From NCBI RefSeq assembly GCF_000143415.4, contig NW_003314276.1:1336531-1400530 (forward strand): DNA of 64,000 nucleotides, in the 5' to 3' direction. Under the pieces are notes generated by a model. The model worked only from the letters and a program-made list of their open reading frames with translations, had not been told where the DNA came from and did not search any database. Positions 16,436-25,040 of this stretch are shown piece after piece. The stretch comes from Selaginella moellendorffii. Taxonomy: Eukaryota; Plantae; Lycopodiophyta. The position numbers and the translations under genes are program-made. How positions within the stretch are numbered: the first letter of the stretch is position 1; every line of letters begins with the position of its first letter.

Positions 16436-17249
16436 CCACTTAGGCGCAGTAGAGCATGGTCTCTCAATCGTCAACCCTAATCCCTAATCGAGTAGGAGAC
16501 TGGTCTTTCATAGGGATGATCTGGCCACATACTGAGGGCATCGCTGCAGCCTCTAGTGCTCCTGGATCCAGCACTCTACTCTTGCAAGTGTTGTTTTTCT
16601 GGCCTCACTTTTGCAGCTGCCCGGCATAAGCAACCCCGAGTGCCAACCCACTTAAGTTTGTTTCCAATCCAATCCATACACGCTAAAAGCCACTTGGAAC
16701 CAAAACAATAAACTCACAATTGTGTCACACACTCACAGCAAGGCCGTCGTTGGCCATTTCCTAATGGTGCCAAGCTGAATCCAACCACACTATTTTGATT
16801 GAGAGCTCGCGATCAATCAAGAAGAAACCACCTAAAGGAAAACCGATGCTTTGCTTTGCTCCTGTTTTAGCTACACTCACTTCCAACTCGCTGCCTCTAC
16901 TTCCGTTTAGTACATACACTATTTTACAATTGAACATCAAGTATCATAAGATGGTGGACGACTTACTAGGGTCGAAGCCTCTCCTCATCTCTGCCATTCA
17001 CGTGCTGGTCGTGGTCGTTGATGTCCTTCACTTACAATTCTATGCTTTGGCGTTGCCTCGGTGGTCCGCACGGCTTTAAAATGGTGGGCCCAGATCACAT
17101 GGCCGGACTGAAAGCACGTGTTTTGACAGAGATAACCAATCAGGCGCTCTTGATTTTAAAGCACGTGTTTTTCTCTCACATGCTTGACAGGCCTATAAAT
17201 GTATGCAAGAATTGCTGTGACTTGCCAACATCGAGAAGTCATTGGAACC

Positions 17250-18035
17250 ATGCTTCTTCGTGCTCTATCGCTCTTTGCATTGTGTTTGCTGGTTTCCGCA
17301 GCACCAGCATCACCCCCTCCTCCTGGTTCATGTTCATCCGACGCTGACTGCCCGGAGGCATACCCCTGCTGTAGTTCATGGGGAGACTGTGGCAACAAAG
17401 CCCCATGGTGTTCGTCGCCTCCTCCACCGCCTCCACCATGCAAGTCTCCTTTATATGGTACTAGTGCTGATGGTACTGCCTTCAGTGGAAGTCTTACGAG
17501 TACGCCACTGGAGGGGCTACGCATAATCAGCGGTTGTGTGGTTGATGCCATTCAGTGGAAGTCTTCGGGTTCTTCTTGGACTCAAATGTATGGAACGAAC
17601 TCCTGTTCAGGATGTTTACCACAGCCGCCTCCGCAAGCTGGTCTGAGAAGCACATCCTACGAGGTCTTTTTAAGTTAACGTTTTTCTTACTTTCTCAATT
17701 TCTTTCTGCAGATCTCTTTGGGCTCGGATGAGTACATTTACAAGGTATCGGGTACAACTGGAACAGACAAAACATGCGGTGCTGGTTGGGCGGGAGAAGG
17801 TGTTGTTTCGCTGACTGTGCATGTCAAGAACATGAAAACTGGTAAAACCAAACCATATGGTCCATTTGGTACTTCGACGAGTGGCACTTCCTTCGAAACA
17901 GCACCAGGCAACATAGTCTCGTTCTTTGGATATGCAAGCCCCAAGTCATATATGAAAGGCATCGGTGTTATCTATTCGACGTGCCCATCCAGTTCTGTTC
18001 AGACCACCCCCATGGGGGCGTTTAGCATCATTTAA
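17250..18035 (+). CDS. Secreted chimeric lectin: signal peptide + hevein/chitin-binding-like domain + poly-Pro linker + jacalin-like domain (2 exons)
   Basis: ATG 17250, hydrophobic leader. C-x5-C-x5-CCS-x-WG-x-CG-x5-C hevein-like motif. Jacalin-like I.SG.VVDAIQ, L.SDEYI.KVSG, YGPFG, IVSFFG, GIGV. In-frame GT-AG intron 17664-17711. TATA-like TATAAA at ~17194. Confidence 0.85.
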
Positions 18036-20027
18036 GGAGTTGCCAAACTATGGTGCTATGCCAGACTATGTAATAAAGATTTGGTGCTATGCTAAACTAT
18101 GTAATAAAGATTTTGGTGCTGTATTATCTGAGCAGCTCGCAGGGCTCCAGAGAATACAAGTCGGACTGCTAGCAAAAATGATCTATCTATCTATATGCTA
18201 TTTTGAGTGCCCATCCTGAAGCATGAGACGCATTTTTTGCGTCGCTGTCATCTTCCATCGCCTCCAATGGCGTCTTCACTTCCATGGTTGGGCGGGATCT
18301 TGTCTAATTGTTCTTTGCTTCGTTCTAGGAGGCTATCTAGCCTATCTATGAGGCTAAAGGTGTTGGTTCTTTTCTCATTGAGCTTAACAATGGGACTACA
18401 TGCCAGATTGACCACAAAATTTTTTCCTATATCTTGTTCAATTTTCTGGAAATCAATGCAGTATTACTTTTTTTTTTCTTTTATGCCCCTTCTTTTTGTT
18501 CACCTAATGGCAGAGTAATATATTCATCCTTTACAACAGCCTTTCCCTCATTAGCAATTGGTGTAATTACTTAATACTATGACCAAAACTAAATAATCAC
18601 ATTCAATTAATGGTAACATTTATGGTGTATAGTATAATTCTTTTTACTTTTACTGCTAATCCTTGAGTTTCTCTAAATTTCTTCTATGAGATGATTATAA
18701 GGATGATTTGTATTATTAATTTGATCATTTTACAATGATTACTATCTATCATTCTTCAAATGATATTTGGCATTTGCACAAATTTCCCAAATGTTTACAA
18801 AGGATAATTTTACAATGATACAATGTTTTAAGCACAGACACTTCTGCAGATTAAAGTTGTGGGAATACTAAATTAGCACACGATGTGATTATACAAGAAC
18901 TTTGCTGTAAAATGCTAATCTGTTGTCTTGAGAGCCACAGCCTCCACCCACATAGTGAAGAAATTTATTGCCAACAAGTAATAGTGGCTACGTAAAGATG
19001 CTAGAGATAATGGGCAAGTGTAAAATGGACTTGAAAAGGTAATGAACTGAAAGGGAAAATGTTGCTTCAAGGATTGAACTGTTAGCATATGCCTCTATGG
19101 CCTTGAAAATAACAGGCCAATAAAAACCACCATTGTTGATCCTGCAAAATGGCCTTTATAAAGGTGAAAGACTTTGACTTTAGCTTCTGTCAAGCAGCAC
19201 AGTCAAGCTGTCAACAAGAAAAATTCTGAGCCTTGATCTCCAAAGCCCGTTGCCACACCATTGGCAAGTTGTCTGGGGACTCTTGTGATGCAAATTTGAC
19301 CTTGGTGTCAATGGGTGCACAATAGATTTGCTTTTGTCAACTGCCCAGGGTTTGCTAGGCAATTTATACTCTTGGTTCTAGTATGCTCAAGAGTTGATTA
19401 CATAGGAACTCTAAGGTTGTCAATGTAAAGTTAGAGGAGTGGTTCATTCTTGATGCAACTTTTCATATACCAATATAACTGTCTCCTCAAAATAAAGGTG
19501 ACTTTAAGTTCCCTAGTCCACCCGCTGGACCGCTTTGTAGCTTTGCTAAGATTTGTCAATGCTTATTCCCCATTGAGTGGTACACTCTAAGCCACTTGGG
19601 GTTGATGTTCATCAAGTAGTATTGGCAGCATGCTTGGCAAGCCCTGGTCGCTGGCCATGAGCACTGTGTTGGCTGGCCCAAGAATCTCTGCTTAAACTCA
19701 TTTCTTGGATTTTCAATGACAAAGCTTCTTATTGGTCACACTAATTGTGGCGAGTTTCTTTGGAGTAGCCTTCTGGTCACTGGAAACGCTTCGGTATGCC
19801 GAGAGCCAGGCTTGGCTCCGTGGCACCACTTGGAGCAGGTGATCGATGTAGAGACAGATTTTCCTTATCACTTTTCTTGCAACATTGGCAGACGGAGAAG
19901 TCACAAAGCAAGCTTAAATGATGGAGAAAACCGGCATTTGATCTGAAAGCTCGTCGCTCTCAAAGACAGGCAAACGTCCTATTGTTGTTCTTTCCCTACA
20001 GTAAAAATTTTGAGCTCAAATGAGTAG

Positions 20028-20969
20028 CTACTCATTACTGTCCTGCCACGACTCAAGGGCCGCAAAGAACCTCTGCCAACCGAAGTAGACCCCCTCGATG
20101 ATAAGAGCAGTCAGGTCCCTGGGATCGTCGTCGTCCTCGCGAGCACTCTCGAAGCACTTGAGGTAGACATCCCGGTTCACAAAGTCGTGGTGGCGGCCAG
20201 CACCAGCAGCAGCAGCAGCGAACAAGACGTTGGGGAACACAGCCACGCTGCGAAGCAAGTAGGCCAGCATCATCCTCCCGCATCGCCCATTCCCATCCAC
20301 AAACGGATGGACGCACTCAAACTTGTAGAAGAATTCTGAGGCCAGCACCAGGAGCTGCTCCACCGTCTTGCAGCTGATTGTCGTCCTCTCCTCCTCGAAG
20401 AGCCGCTGCAGATCCGCGTTGGTCTTGCTCACCAACTTGGACAGCTTCGGCCGGATTGCCCAGGCATCCGCGTAGAAGTGCTGCCTTCCGCTGCTCGTGA
20501 TCGTCATTGCAACCTCGTTGCCGGACCGAAACAAGCCCGCGATGTCCGGCCTGCCCGACTCCATAAGCAGCTCGTGTGACTGCCTGAGCTTGTAGTTGTT
20601 GACGCTGGGATCCTCCTCCTGATCCTGGAGCCACCATGTCTTGTTGAATGCTCGGGACAGGCAGCGGACTTGTTCCAATCTCTCGTCCCGAGCCACTACT
20701 TTGTCGTCCAAGTCCCCTTGGAGCTGCTCCAGGGCGTGGAGTGTTTCATCCCGGGTATCAAAGCCTTCCAGCTCCAGCTTGTTCACCTGGAACAGGAAGT
20801 CGGCCATGGCGTCGCGCTGCGCGTACACGTCCAGCGCCCATGCTTTGGCATCGCCATCCAACGCCAGGAACCTCTTCACGTACCCACAAATGGCGTCCAC
20901 CATGCTGCTCGTCGCCGGGGCTCCGTCGCCACCGCACCTCCAAAAGGGCCTCTCCGCGTATCGCCCCAT
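20028..20969 (-). CDS. Fic-domain protein (AMPylase/Fido family), 313 aa, coding region intronless
   Basis: Canonical catalytic motif HPFVDGNGRCGR. Flap-like AGLFRSG.EV. N-terminal NKLELEG resembles the inhibitory (S/T)xxxE(G/N) helix. A TTACAG acceptor-like site just before the ATG may indicate an upstream exon. Confidence 0.9.
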   Translation of the reverse strand: MGRYAERPFWRCGGDGAPATSSMVDAICGYVKRFLALDGDAKAWALDVYAQRDAMADFLFQVNKLELEGFDTRDETLHALEQLQGDLDDKVVARDERLEQVRCLSRAFNKTWWLQDQEEDPSVNNYKLRQSHELLMESGRPDIAGLFRSGNEVAMTITSSGRQHFYADAWAIRPKLSKLVSKTNADLQRLFEEERTTISCKTVEQLLVLASEFFYKFECVHPFVDGNGRCGRMMLAYLLRSVAVFPNVLFAAAAAGAGRHHDFVNRDVYLKCFESAREDDDDPRDLTALIIEGVYFGWQRFFAALESWQDSNE

Positions 20970-21429
20970 CTGTAAGCCCTAACCAACAAGGGCTCCATGT
21001 TATACCCTTTTCATTTTAAGGTGGCTATGTATAAAGCTTTCTCAAATTTGTGTAAACCTATATTCCGAGAATATTCCAAGGCCCCTCAAAATATGCAATA
21101 TGAGAGCCTAAACACTGTGTAACCATTTTCATGCATGGATATTTGTAGTACTTGGTACCTGAGAACCGAACATGCTATCCAGCTGGCCTGTTGAAATCAT
21201 TTTCACAGCACAGGAAAGTGTTTGTCCATACCCCAAGTGTCACTTTAATCATGCCGGTTGCAGCTCGAGCCCGCTTCTTCCCCTTGTTTTGCGGCGCAGA
21301 AGCACGAAATCAGCTTGAAATACAAAGATGTCACACCCTGGCCAAAGATCACATCGCCAAGGTGAGAATCTCAACACTCTAGAATCCTCAAAGTCTCACC
21401 TCACGCGAGAATTCCAGGCAAAAACAGCC

Positions 21430-22854
21430 ATGGACAAGTTCCTCCAAAGCGTCGAGTCGAATCCCCACAGACGAGACGCAGCCGAGCCTTGCTACTCGCT
21501 GCACGAGCCAGGAGACCTCGTCTATGGAACCGCTCTCGTCTTTCACGGATTCGGGCAATCTCCACAGCAGTGCCAGTTGCTCGCGGACTACCTGTTTGAC
21601 AATGGCTTCAATGTCTACCAGCCTTGCCTTGCTCGCCACTATCTCGGAAATCCGACTCTAAACTGGCCGCAGGTGACACATCTTAAAGTTCGCTCTTTAC
21701 TTTCATCTCCACCCAGGTCGATCTCAAGCCGGAACTGAAAGAGAAGATCCGGCAAAACTTCCTCAAGGATCCGGTCCTAGCCAAGGAGCTCTATATCTCT
21801 GTAAGCCTTCGGCTATGACGTTTTCATCCTGCTGACAGTCTGCTGGCCTGTGTTCTTCGTGATTGTTGTCCCAGGCGGAAGACACCATGCAGCGAGTTCG
21901 CTCCCTTTCCCCCGAAATGTCTGATATAATCGCTGCGCTCGACCAAGGTGACCGTAGCCAGGATTTCCAGAGGTCTGTGAGCGCTGCTCTTCACCTCCAA
22001 AATGAACTAACCACTTGGCTGCCAGGTTTTTCGACTCGAGCCACTTGGACTACTTCACGGAAGCCGAGCAGCGACTAGAAGAAGTGCGTGCTCTGCCAGG
22101 CCCGATCTTCGCGATAGGCATCTCGATGGGAGGAGCCACTGCGTTGCATCTCGCCAACACTTATCCAGACACAATCTCGAAAGTCGTAGCGTACGCCCCG
22201 CTCCTGAAGGTAGGACGAAACTTAGGCTTCGAAACAAAAGAAGAAAGAACAAACTTACTAATGATCGATCGATTTTCTGGCCAGACAATGGATGATGCGA
22301 GGAGAGAATTTGCTCTGGCGATCGGCCCGCTGGACGTGAAAGAAACCGGATGGGAGCCATCGCTCCAGTTCACAGTGGGATGCCTTGTAGCAATCGACCT
22401 GTGTGGGACTCGCATCAGCCAATCCAACATAGATAACCTCGCAAAGAAAGTCGCTACCTTGCTACTCTTCACCGCAAACGAAGACTCGGCCGACCTTCCA
22501 ACGCAGGAGAAATTCGCGCAAAGACTAAAAGCCATCTCCTCCGGTAGGATGCTTTGATCTTCAACAATGCGGAAAAATTCTCCCGTTGCTACTGTCCCAG
22601 ATGGAGTGCCACACCTGCATTACACATATCGCCGCGAGCTGGAAGTCCCGCACGCGATGATCCACCCAAACGAGGTAGGAAATCGAGAAATTCTCGAGAG
22701 ATTTCTAACCTCTCGCTTGGCGCAGAGGCCGATCGCGAACAAGCTGTGGAGAAGAATGTACCAGGAGACATTTCGATTCCTGACCACCGGGAAGGCGCGC
22801 CAGGACGAGCTCGATTCGCTGCGCCAAGACGAAACCCTACCCCAAGTACCATAA
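21430..22854 (+). CDS. Alpha/beta-hydrolase (carboxylesterase/lipase-like), about 7 exons
   Basis: VFHGFG oxyanion motif, GISMG nucleophile elbow, ANEDSAD acid, VPHAM histidine. Exons can be joined across ~45-75-nt GT-AG introns. Confidence 0.85.
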
Positions 22855-23157
22855 ACCCTAAAACCCCAAATTCTCGGGAGCAAACTTTTATCTCCTCGTG
22901 AGAGCGAACAAACTAAACTCTAGAACTTTGGATCAAACCTGAGAGATCTATTCCTATCCTAGATAGAAGTTTTTCGTTGTGATCTTCTTCTCAAGCTCCT
23001 GTGACTCTCGAAAGAACTTAGAACTCTCTGGAACTTGACGCTCGCTCTACCTGCAAGGAAGAAAGAACGTCGATCAAAACACGAGAAAAGAGAGAGAACC
23101 ACCATCGCCACTCGCCTGGAAGAACTTGGAACTCGGCATGGATGGTGTGGAGTCGCT

Positions 23158-23913
23158 TCACTGCTCGCCATCCGAGGCCGTGGATTGCTGGCCTTGAGCC
23201 TGCGATTGCTGGGCTTGGGTCTGTTGATCCGGCTGCCACTGCTGCTGCTGCTGCTGCTGCGGCGACGCCATGTACTGCATTGGCGGCCGCTGCTGCTGCG
23301 CGTAGAGCGCTGGATCCATTGGAATGGCCGGCCTTCCAATCACCCCCGGAGGAGTCTGCCCAGGAATCATGTAGTACTGCATGTCCGGAGCTCCGATCGG
23401 CAGCGCTGATCGCGAGACACCCAGCGCCTCGTCCTTGACATCCTCGCGCGGCACGATGTCCACCAGGAAATCGAAGATGTCCGTGCGAGTGACCGCCGCC
23501 GCGATGTCGTTCTTCTGGAGCGTCCGCCGCTTGTTCTCCTCGGTGTGCATCCACGCGCGCAGCGTCAGCTCCAGGATGAACATCTCGCACGCCTTGGCGA
23601 AGAGCACGGGCGCCTCGCCCGAGATCATCCTCACGTCCTCGTCCGCCTTCATGATCTTCTTGATGCGCGCCAGGGGCAGGCTGTGCGTCTTGAAATCCAT
23701 CACCTCCTGGACCTCTTGCATCTGCCCCATCCAAAACTCTTGCATCTGCCGCTGCTGCTGCTGCTGCAAATGCTGGTAGCTCATCCCCGGCGCTGGGAAT
23801 CCCCCCGCTGGCTGCCCCGCCGCGATCTGACCTAGCGCCATGCCCGGAGGAGCCCCAGCGCCCGCCATTCCCTGCCCGGCGTACTGCGATTCGTTCTGCG
23901 AGCTCTGATCCAT
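23158..23913 (-). CDS. NF-YC: Nuclear transcription factor Y subunit C (HAP5)
   Basis: Histone-fold signature [39 protein letters not shown]...[25 protein letters not shown]; Gln-rich flanks. Confidence 0.97.
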
Positions 23914-25040
23914 GCTCACCCCTGCCACGGCCAGGAGGAAGGATCTCAGCTAGAGCGCCGCGCGGCGGCGAGGGATTTTCCGGGAGGAAAGATTGGAAAT
24001 ATCGGGCCTACCTGGTGGATCGCGCTCGCGTCTCCCGGCCTGTGCGCCTTAGGGCTCGCGCTTCGTTGCAGGCCGTAAGATCCCACTAGTCCGTTGCCCT
24101 TCACTGACGGCCGTCAATCGGGGGCTTGGCACGTGGTGCTCCATCACACCGTCTAATTTAAAATTTCTAGGGGTTAGGGTTTAATATTGAAAAAGTACTA
24201 ACTAAATTAAAGTGGTATAACAATTTTTTTAATAGTGTAATATTTTTAATATTTAATATTATTTTTAATTTATTAAATTAGCTGATCCTTATTTCTAAAA
24301 ATTGATTAAACAATCCCAAATTTGTGTAGCTTATAAAATATTTATTTTTACTAAATAGATTTCAATTGTTACTTGCCTCACTCATATAATTTTTAAGAAC
24401 TCTAGATATATGAGAATAAAAAAATTTAAATACTCGACATACATACTGAAAGTTGTTGAAGAATTTTTTGATATAAAAATCTTAATCCGAAATCAAGAAT
24501 AATCTTCATTATAATGTAGTCATTGGTATTAGAAATAAATAATTTATCATAAATAAAATAAGAATGTAGATTGAATTCTATTTTATATCCTAAAGGCAAA
24601 AAAGTTAATCTCGCAGTTCTATAATTTATTTTATGTAAAGTAGAATGTTATTGATGTTATTTTAGATTATACACTTTTAACTGTGAAAACAAAACTTACA
24701 AAAATCAGATTTCTTTTTTATCCCACTATGGTTCTGTTTGATTTATACAAGTTACCCACCGCTTTCTTCATTGAGCTGCCTTCGTTGGTATGAAAAAAAA
24801 ACCTTCCCAACGTCAAAGGAAAGCACTGGCAAAAAACCATCCAGCCGATACACTCTGCCTGTTAGCAATTTGTCTGTCATGTGATCTATAATACAGCACC
24901 AGTCGTGTCTTGTCTTTCTGCCGCTGCACCACCAAAATTATTCCAAAACCGAAATACTCCCGAGAAAAATGTACACCTTGCACCAAAAAAACACTCCCTC
25001 CCACCTCAGCTTCCCGCTTGCCTGCCTCGTCGTGTTGATT

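Follow-up and report, generated by a model that had tools for sequence, protein, structure and literature searches.

The best solved relatives of the gene described here, by profile as well as by fold, are human FICD (HYPE) and C. elegans FIC-1, the enzymes that AMPylate and deAMPylate BiP. In the FICD/HYPE layout a transmembrane (TM) anchor and TPR repeats precede the Fic domain, in which an inhibitory helix is followed by a flap and then by the HPFxDGNGRxxR core. Fic enzymes that possess the full motif can use UTP, GTP and CDP-choline. A further group of relatives consists of the bacterial class II proteins SoFic, Dde_2494 (PDB: 4rgl), BT_2513 (PDB: 3cuc) and CdFic, which are soluble, have the same fold and carry an intramolecular inhibitory helix with a canonical SNAIEG/N sequence, many of them also having a winged-helix/HTH domain at the C-terminus. 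Engel et al. are said to have defined class II in 2012 as the Fic proteins with an intramolecular N-terminal inhibitory helix.

For plants, a 2025 review describes FIC proteins as absent, as they are said to be in fungi (PMC12409994); the in-silico survey by Khater and Mohanty (2015; PMC4454073) groups plant Fic with Dictyostelium and fungi in clade E2. Other proteins encoded in the Selaginella genome are already recognised as Fic in databases, among them D8SRP9 ('Fido domain-containing protein') and XP_024542721 (RefSeq 'adenosine monophosphate-protein transferase fic-1'). They contain a complete Fic motif and belong to the same plant clade as the gene described here but represent other subfamilies, with about 27-29% identity to it. 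A literature search on Selaginella Fic, Fido or adenylyltransferase gave no mention of Selaginella among its best matches. The original prediction that the gene belongs to an uncharacterised plant system therefore stands for the literature searched, whereas sister subfamilies already bear Fido or fic-1 labels in UniProt and RefSeq and plant Fic is mentioned in the 2015 survey.

Gene structure and catalytic motif

The window analyzed is a stretch of 64,000 nucleotides from Selaginella moellendorffii, in which an ATG-to-stop open reading frame (ORF) of 313 aa without introns was found on the minus strand. An in-frame TAG is located upstream at 20979-20981, four codons before the ATG. The features of the gene are as follows.

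20028..20969, minus strand: coding sequence of a soluble Fic enzyme, intronless (ORF, Pfam, AlphaFold2, Foldseek and sense RNA reads)
20274..20309, minus strand: Fic catalytic motif HPFVDGNGRCGR, H221 to R232 (residues 221-232)
20763..20798, minus strand: inhibitory-helix-like segment F58-G69, FLFQVNKLELEG (E66 codon at 20772-20774)
20157..20432, minus strand: false GT..AG 'intron' of SELMODRAFT_411522 (276 nt, 92 codons), really coding and holding the active site
19523..20027, minus strand: probable 3' untranslated region (contig 19523-20092 of study X1 and low sense depth to about 19500)

The ORF matches Pfam PF02661 (Fic) over residues 127-239 with 48.1 bits (E 2e-12), the cut-off being 24 bits. 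The complete HxFx(D/E)GN(G/K)RxxR consensus is satisfied by HPFVDGNGRCGR, including the second arginine R232, and the H, P, F, G, N, G, R and R of the motif are invariant across 101 aligned relatives. Matches of the ORF to NCBIfam models of SoFic-type adenylyltransferases were sub-threshold. A chance ORF is excluded by the full-length homologues found in Selaginella and ferns. The locus is a genuine intact Fic gene of Selaginella moellendorffii, in agreement with the original prediction of an intact 313-aa Fic frame with the full motif and its second arginine.

The Pfam scan of the 313-aa protein returned the Fic domain alone, with no TPR and no other domain, and no N-terminal hydrophobic stretch was found by hydropathy. 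The top 19-residue hydrophobic stretch (Kyte-Doolittle mean 1.63) coincides with the core helix 233-251 that follows the motif, so that neither a TM anchor nor a signal peptide is present. The protein differs in this from the FICD/HYPE layout, about 60 residues preceding the inhibitory segment, and the lack of TM and TPR regions claimed earlier was borne out by both analyses.

Transcription and the public gene model

The public model SELMODRAFT_411522, which matches at 100% identity in a word search and lies on a scaffold of 2.68 Mb, places the Fic gene in a non-seed land plant as had been claimed. This model has 221 aa and equals the ORF minus residues 180-271; excising exactly 20157-20432 from the ORF reproduces it (P0001). 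The supposed intron contains the whole catalytic motif and forms the most conserved part of the family.

Three raw stranded RNA-seq runs from one study were mapped to the locus as 12% samples. In all three runs, sense reads cover 20024-20943 at about 3-9x and reads in the opposite orientation are near zero. The first mate of the Fic read pairs is on the plus strand, whereas the spliced reads of a plus-strand hydrolase neighbour have their first mate on the minus strand, which identifies the Fic reads as sense with respect to the minus-strand ORF. No splice joints inside the Fic ORF were reported in the three stranded runs, and the depth of bin 20208-20391, within the supposed intron, equals or exceeds that of the flanking bins. 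Since sense reads run across 20157-20432 with no joint, the SELMODRAFT_411522 model is wrong and the enzyme is intact.

In the independent study X1, contigs were found over 19523-20092 (570 nt), 20449-20687 and 20749-20964, and contigs of this study also carry the splice joints of the hydrolase neighbour. The contig over 20449-20687 has two mismatches to the window as against 10-12 plus gaps for the paralogues L001 and L002. At ten sites in the ORF about half of the reads have other letters, several of them paralogue-like, with the window letters present too; part of the RNA depth, which is low for the Fic gene, thus comes from another allele or from paralogues. The Fic gene is transcribed from its own strand and unspliced, the expression check proposed in the original prediction having given sense transcription in the three stranded runs and contigs of the locus in X1.

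Genomic setting

The genes flanking the Fic gene are of plant type, namely a jacalin lectin, an alpha/beta hydrolase and an NF-Y/histone-fold gene.

17.2-18.0 kb, plus strand: jacalin lectin (flank domain search)
about 21.25-22.9 kb, plus strand: alpha/beta hydrolase (flank search; seven GT..AG introns in RNA)
23.16-23.93 kb (23158-23928), minus strand: NF-Y/histone-fold gene (flank search)

The hydrolase neighbour was identified in exon-by-exon searches, and its seven introns, all short, were observed in the stranded RNA-seq. No terminal inverted or long direct repeats were found around the Fic gene, and a transposon or cassette origin was rejected on this ground. A class I Fic toxin-antitoxin module was likewise rejected, as the inhibitory segment is part of the Fic protein itself, no antitoxin gene is linked and the flanks are ordinary plant genes that differ among the paralogues.

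Two observations were made on the neighbouring genes themselves. The lectin-like gene (17199-18035, plus strand) is highly expressed and combines a jacalin domain with a weak chitin-binding match; many of its reads have loose ends at 18003-18005, which points to a splice site there. Spliced minus-strand transcripts at 21128-22967 run antisense through the entire alpha/beta hydrolase gene, with CT..AC joints at 21336-21399, 22202-22258, 22396-22456 and 22638-22710, and appear to continue from the NF-Y/histone-fold gene.

Predicted fold and the inhibitory glutamate

The AlphaFold2 model, run on an alignment of 101 sequences, has a pLDDT of 91.5 and a pTM of 0.91 for the 313-aa protein, and shows the Fic fold with predicted strands 155-157 and 163-165 preceding helices 169-238. 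Foldseek gave a probability of 1.0 to more than 50 Fic structures. Over about 290 columns (TM 0.57-0.65) the model aligned with C. elegans FIC-1, human FICD, Dde_2494 (4rgl), BT_2513 (3cuc) and SoFic, all five of which are class II proteins, with FIC-1 and FICD as the best matches. The same two proteins were also the best PDB sequences for a 17-member family profile (E 1.6e-22 to 1e-19), which matched bacterial class II PDB proteins at 1e-17 to 1e-10; 4rgl was the best PDB match of a single-sequence search.

The profile HMM places the glutamate of the family segment 'vnliEgeG' under E234 of FICD (TVAIEGN) and under the position of E274G in FIC-1. In SoFic the inhibitory glutamate equivalent to FICD E234 is E73. 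The equivalent residue in the window protein is E66, within V62-N-K-L-E66-L67-E68-G69, where NKLELEG corresponds to residues 63-69. Among the 101 relatives, E66 is found in 89, G69 in 88, N63 in 72 and E68 in 14. The strict (S/T)xxxE(G/N) motif is absent from the window protein owing to V62 and L67; position 62 is S or T in 48 and position 67 is G in 16 of the 101 relatives, which gives a family consensus of [S/V/T]NxxExxG.

From its sequence the protein appears to have the class II layout, with a putative inhibitory helix on the same chain and N-terminal to the catalytic core, although the strength of autoinhibition is uncertain given V62 and L67. The original prediction of an inhibitory-helix segment was correct as to its location at the class II position, whereas its register was off by two residues (E66, not E68) and the strict consensus is not present.

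The likeness to FICD and FIC-1 extends to the order of inhibitory helix, flap and HPFxDGNGRxxR core and to the alignment of E66 with E234/E274. The window protein differs from them in its low identity (16-19%), in having VNKLEL instead of TVAIEGN, in being the product of a multi-copy, intronless gene, and in lacking the TM anchor and TPR, so that an ER-lumenal BiP target is unlikely. From the bacterial class II proteins, with which it shares solubility, fold and an intramolecular inhibitory helix, it differs by the replacement of the canonical SNAIEG/N and by having no winged-helix/HTH C-terminal domain.

A second glutamate was observed in a C-terminal helix at 20094-20111 (residues 287-292, TALIIE, followed by G293), where E292 is found in 74 of the 101 relatives. 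About a quarter of the relatives read (S/T)xxxEG at this place, resembling the C-terminal inhibitory motif of class III. As in FICD, this may be no more than the helix that normally closes the Fic domain.

Paralogues and selection

The locus is not a singleton but one of many Selaginella Fic genes: at least eight related loci were found, six of them intact, and two further Fic subfamilies exist in Selaginella. The five intact paralogues (L002, L003, L170, L171 and L173) have ORFs of 284-364 aa with complete motifs, whereas the corresponding public models (SELMODRAFT_419851, 444864, 447619, 422537 and 414686, respectively) lack the motif. The same gene-model fault hides the motif in the paralogues. 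The intact copy L170 and the two broken copies are located as follows.

L170:4998-6089 (GL377660, SELMODRAFT_447619): intact paralogue ORF with motif HPFLDGNGRVGR
L001:6001-6914 (GL377661): copy with a frameshift after the motif, near FVDR and close to the C-terminus
L172:5418-6050 (GL377601): copy that stops short of the Fic motif, only the N-terminal half being present

The L170 ORF begins with a signal-peptide-like stretch, MLLRFILAIALVIAVDARA, unlike the window gene, and its sequence suggests that the L170 product may enter the secretory pathway, as FICD does.

The paralogous loci are dispersed over different scaffolds, with housekeeping plant genes as neighbours. All copies have a GC3 of 0.76-0.79, with 0.78 in the window gene. 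The window gene and L002 have a dS of 0.17 and a dN of 0.06 (dN/dS 0.35), and for the comparison with L003 dS is saturated with a ratio of about 0.3. Neutral dN/dS values, which had been named as evidence against the prediction, were not seen, and the window gene evolves under purifying selection.

At the DNA level, 20042-20984 of the window shows about 90% similarity to L001:5986-6900 and L002:5920-6841. This similarity begins 15 nt before the ATG and ends 14 nt short of the end of the ORF; the flanks are unrelated, and no conserved synteny with L001 or L002 was found beyond 20042-20984. A plain segmental duplication at a dS of 0.17 should leave similar flanks. The restriction of the similarity to the coding region therefore favors gene conversion or an RNA-mediated copy, either of which is a possible source of the likeness to L001 and L002.

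Family distribution and origin

When 1.84 billion representative proteins were searched exhaustively with a profile, 3151 had an E-value of 0.001 or better, and ten of these reach 1e-30. Eight of the ten are named Selaginella or Adiantum proteins; the other two are a transcript-sized Logan sequence and a 242-aa protein (P0013). The fern homologue is represented by contigs of transcript size in three runs. A maximum-likelihood tree of 109 proteins unites all ten plant rows in a single clade (SH-aLRT 91), within which the window-type Selaginella genes cluster with three sequences that are fern or fern-like (SH-aLRT 94). The remaining rows of the plant clade are the RefSeq 'fic-1' pair, SELMODRAFT_425001 (a 'Fido domain-containing protein' in UniProt) and a second Adiantum gene. 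The backbone of this tree is without resolution.

By profile score, the nearest non-plant proteins belong to a large soluble family with the motif HPFxDGNGRxCR that is represented in crustaceans, molluscs, ascomycetes and large eukaryote-like metagenome contigs. Members with a name come from Hyalella and Procambarus, the names among the nearest relatives being Hyalella, Procambarus, Dinobryon and Selaginella, and a language-model comparison gave clusters from Mollusca and Ascomycota as neighbours. This family matches the plant profile over the full length (E 1e-29 to 1e-20) and has in common with the plant proteins a PxWR at the N-terminus, the NxxExxG segment and a P.DL.AL..EG..GW helix at the C-terminus; its genes are likewise intronless, and they occur in arrays. 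It differs in that identity is only 22-29% and in having no supported join to the plant clade in the tree. On two eukaryote-like metagenome contigs of 0.55-0.62 Mb (L004:5881-9029 and L005:2138-8927), two to three intronless Fic genes were observed in tandem, adjoining SH2 and peptidase M14 fragments.

No close prokaryotic or viral source was found in the searches carried out. The patterns FLFQVN[KH] and [IM]EGVY[VF]GW gave 144 matches in 185,579 prokaryotic species genomes, with no relative among them. The core-motif scan of prokaryotic genomes gave no donor either, as the matches listed are spread over many phyla, with 21-32% identity where long stretches align, up to 58% in motif segments of 33 residues, and E-values of 4e-11 or weaker. 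Among viral contigs (IMG/VR) the matches were confined to distant ones in the core, with at most 40% identity over 120 residues and no close viral source; two of these matches are on giant-virus bins.

The original prediction had offered horizontal acquisition or loss in seed plants as the origin of the gene, and on the sequences compared here either may be true. The presence of the family in both lycophytes and ferns would fit an early vascular-plant ancestor with subsequent loss in seed plants.

Proposed activity and alternative explanations

Our main reading, to which we give a probability of roughly 60%, is that the locus is a nuclear gene for a soluble, single-domain Fic enzyme of class II layout that would carry out glutamate-regulated AMP transfer. 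By homology, E66 would block productive ATP binding in the resting state by pairing with R232. On relief of this block, H221 would catalyse AMP transfer from ATP to the hydroxyl of a Ser, Thr or Tyr, on the enzyme itself and on a target protein. E66 may also support the removal of AMP, by analogy with FICD and in line with what has been reported for SoFic. As the protein has no signal peptide, TM anchor or TPR, it is predicted to act in the cytosol or nucleus rather than on ER-lumenal BiP.

Two of the alternatives concern the reality of the gene. That the locus represents bacterial contamination or a misassembly instead of plant DNA has a negligible probability: Fic genes are mostly bacterial and the window gene is intronless, yet the gene is situated inside a 2.68-Mb scaffold with spliced plant genes on either side, shares its GC3 with paralogues that have ordinary plant genes around them on seven other scaffolds, is contained in the RNA of several Selaginella studies and has, among the prokaryotic matches listed, best ones of only 21-32% identity over long stretches. 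The plant flanks and the spliced hydrolase neighbour in the stranded RNA-seq exclude contamination, which the original prediction had considered as an objection. It is very unlikely that the gene is a decaying relic with read-through or noise transcription and no functional protein, the 221-aa model then perhaps being the true product. RNA coverage is low (about 3-9x with 12% of each run sampled), the spliced minus-strand transcripts at 21128-22967 run toward the gene from upstream, and the copies L001 and L172 are broken, all of which would suit a relic. The ORF of the window gene, however, is intact and under purifying selection and contains no splice joint, the supposed intron is the part that the family conserves most, and a homologue is found in fern transcript-sized contigs. 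In addition, the interval that separates the upstream minus-strand transcript from the Fic ORF has an RNA depth of about 0.2-0.6, after which the depth climbs again.

The other alternatives accept the gene and differ in its function. It is unlikely, though credible, that the product is a conflict or stress effector, i.e., a toxin-like modifier of foreign or self proteins (for example in immunity or programmed growth arrest) from an expanded and diversifying family. The number of copies (at least eight window-type loci plus the two other Selaginella subfamilies), the high divergence of the paralogues (31-40% identity), the presence of one truncated and one frameshifted copy and the tandem arrays of the nearest non-plant relatives on eukaryote-like contigs are in line with this role, whereas the conserved inhibitory glutamate points to a regulated enzyme, a dN/dS of 0.3-0.4 reflects gene-wide constraint and not positive selection, and no partner gene is linked, the flanks differing among the paralogues. 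The many copies and rapid divergence of the family are as compatible with a conflict or stress role as with a housekeeping switch. We consider it quite unlikely that the Fic fold serves a different chemistry here (UMPylation, GMPylation, phosphocholination or phosphorylation) or that the protein is mainly a deAMPylase hydrolase. The full AMPylation-type consensus with D225, N227, R229 and R232 speaks against this, as do the closest solved relatives FICD and FIC-1, which are AMPylases and deAMPylases, even though the Fic family uses several donors, with the CDP complex 7cb8 and the phosphocholine transferase AnkX among the PDB relatives, and though class II SoFic reverses its modification constitutively according to a 2026 preprint.

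Implications for plant Fic proteins

The analysis explains why domain scans missed this subfamily: the active site is removed as an intron in the public gene models, and the window-type subfamily is masked from recognition by them. The corrected models provide defined candidate AMPylases for lycophytes and ferns, and the Fic field would gain a eukaryotic class II enzyme that is soluble and has a variant inhibitory motif. This gain is limited in that sister subfamilies are labelled already, plant Fic appears in the 2015 survey and the function of the clade is a predicted one. As a tentative extension, lycophytes and ferns may keep an ancient vascular-plant family of soluble, glutamate-regulated Fic enzymes that was lost in seed plants and that would reversibly AMPylate cytosolic or nuclear targets and possibly, by way of the paralogue with the signal-peptide-like stretch, secretory-pathway targets. 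If this were true, such a family would constitute a plant protein-modification system that has no counterpart in model angiosperms.
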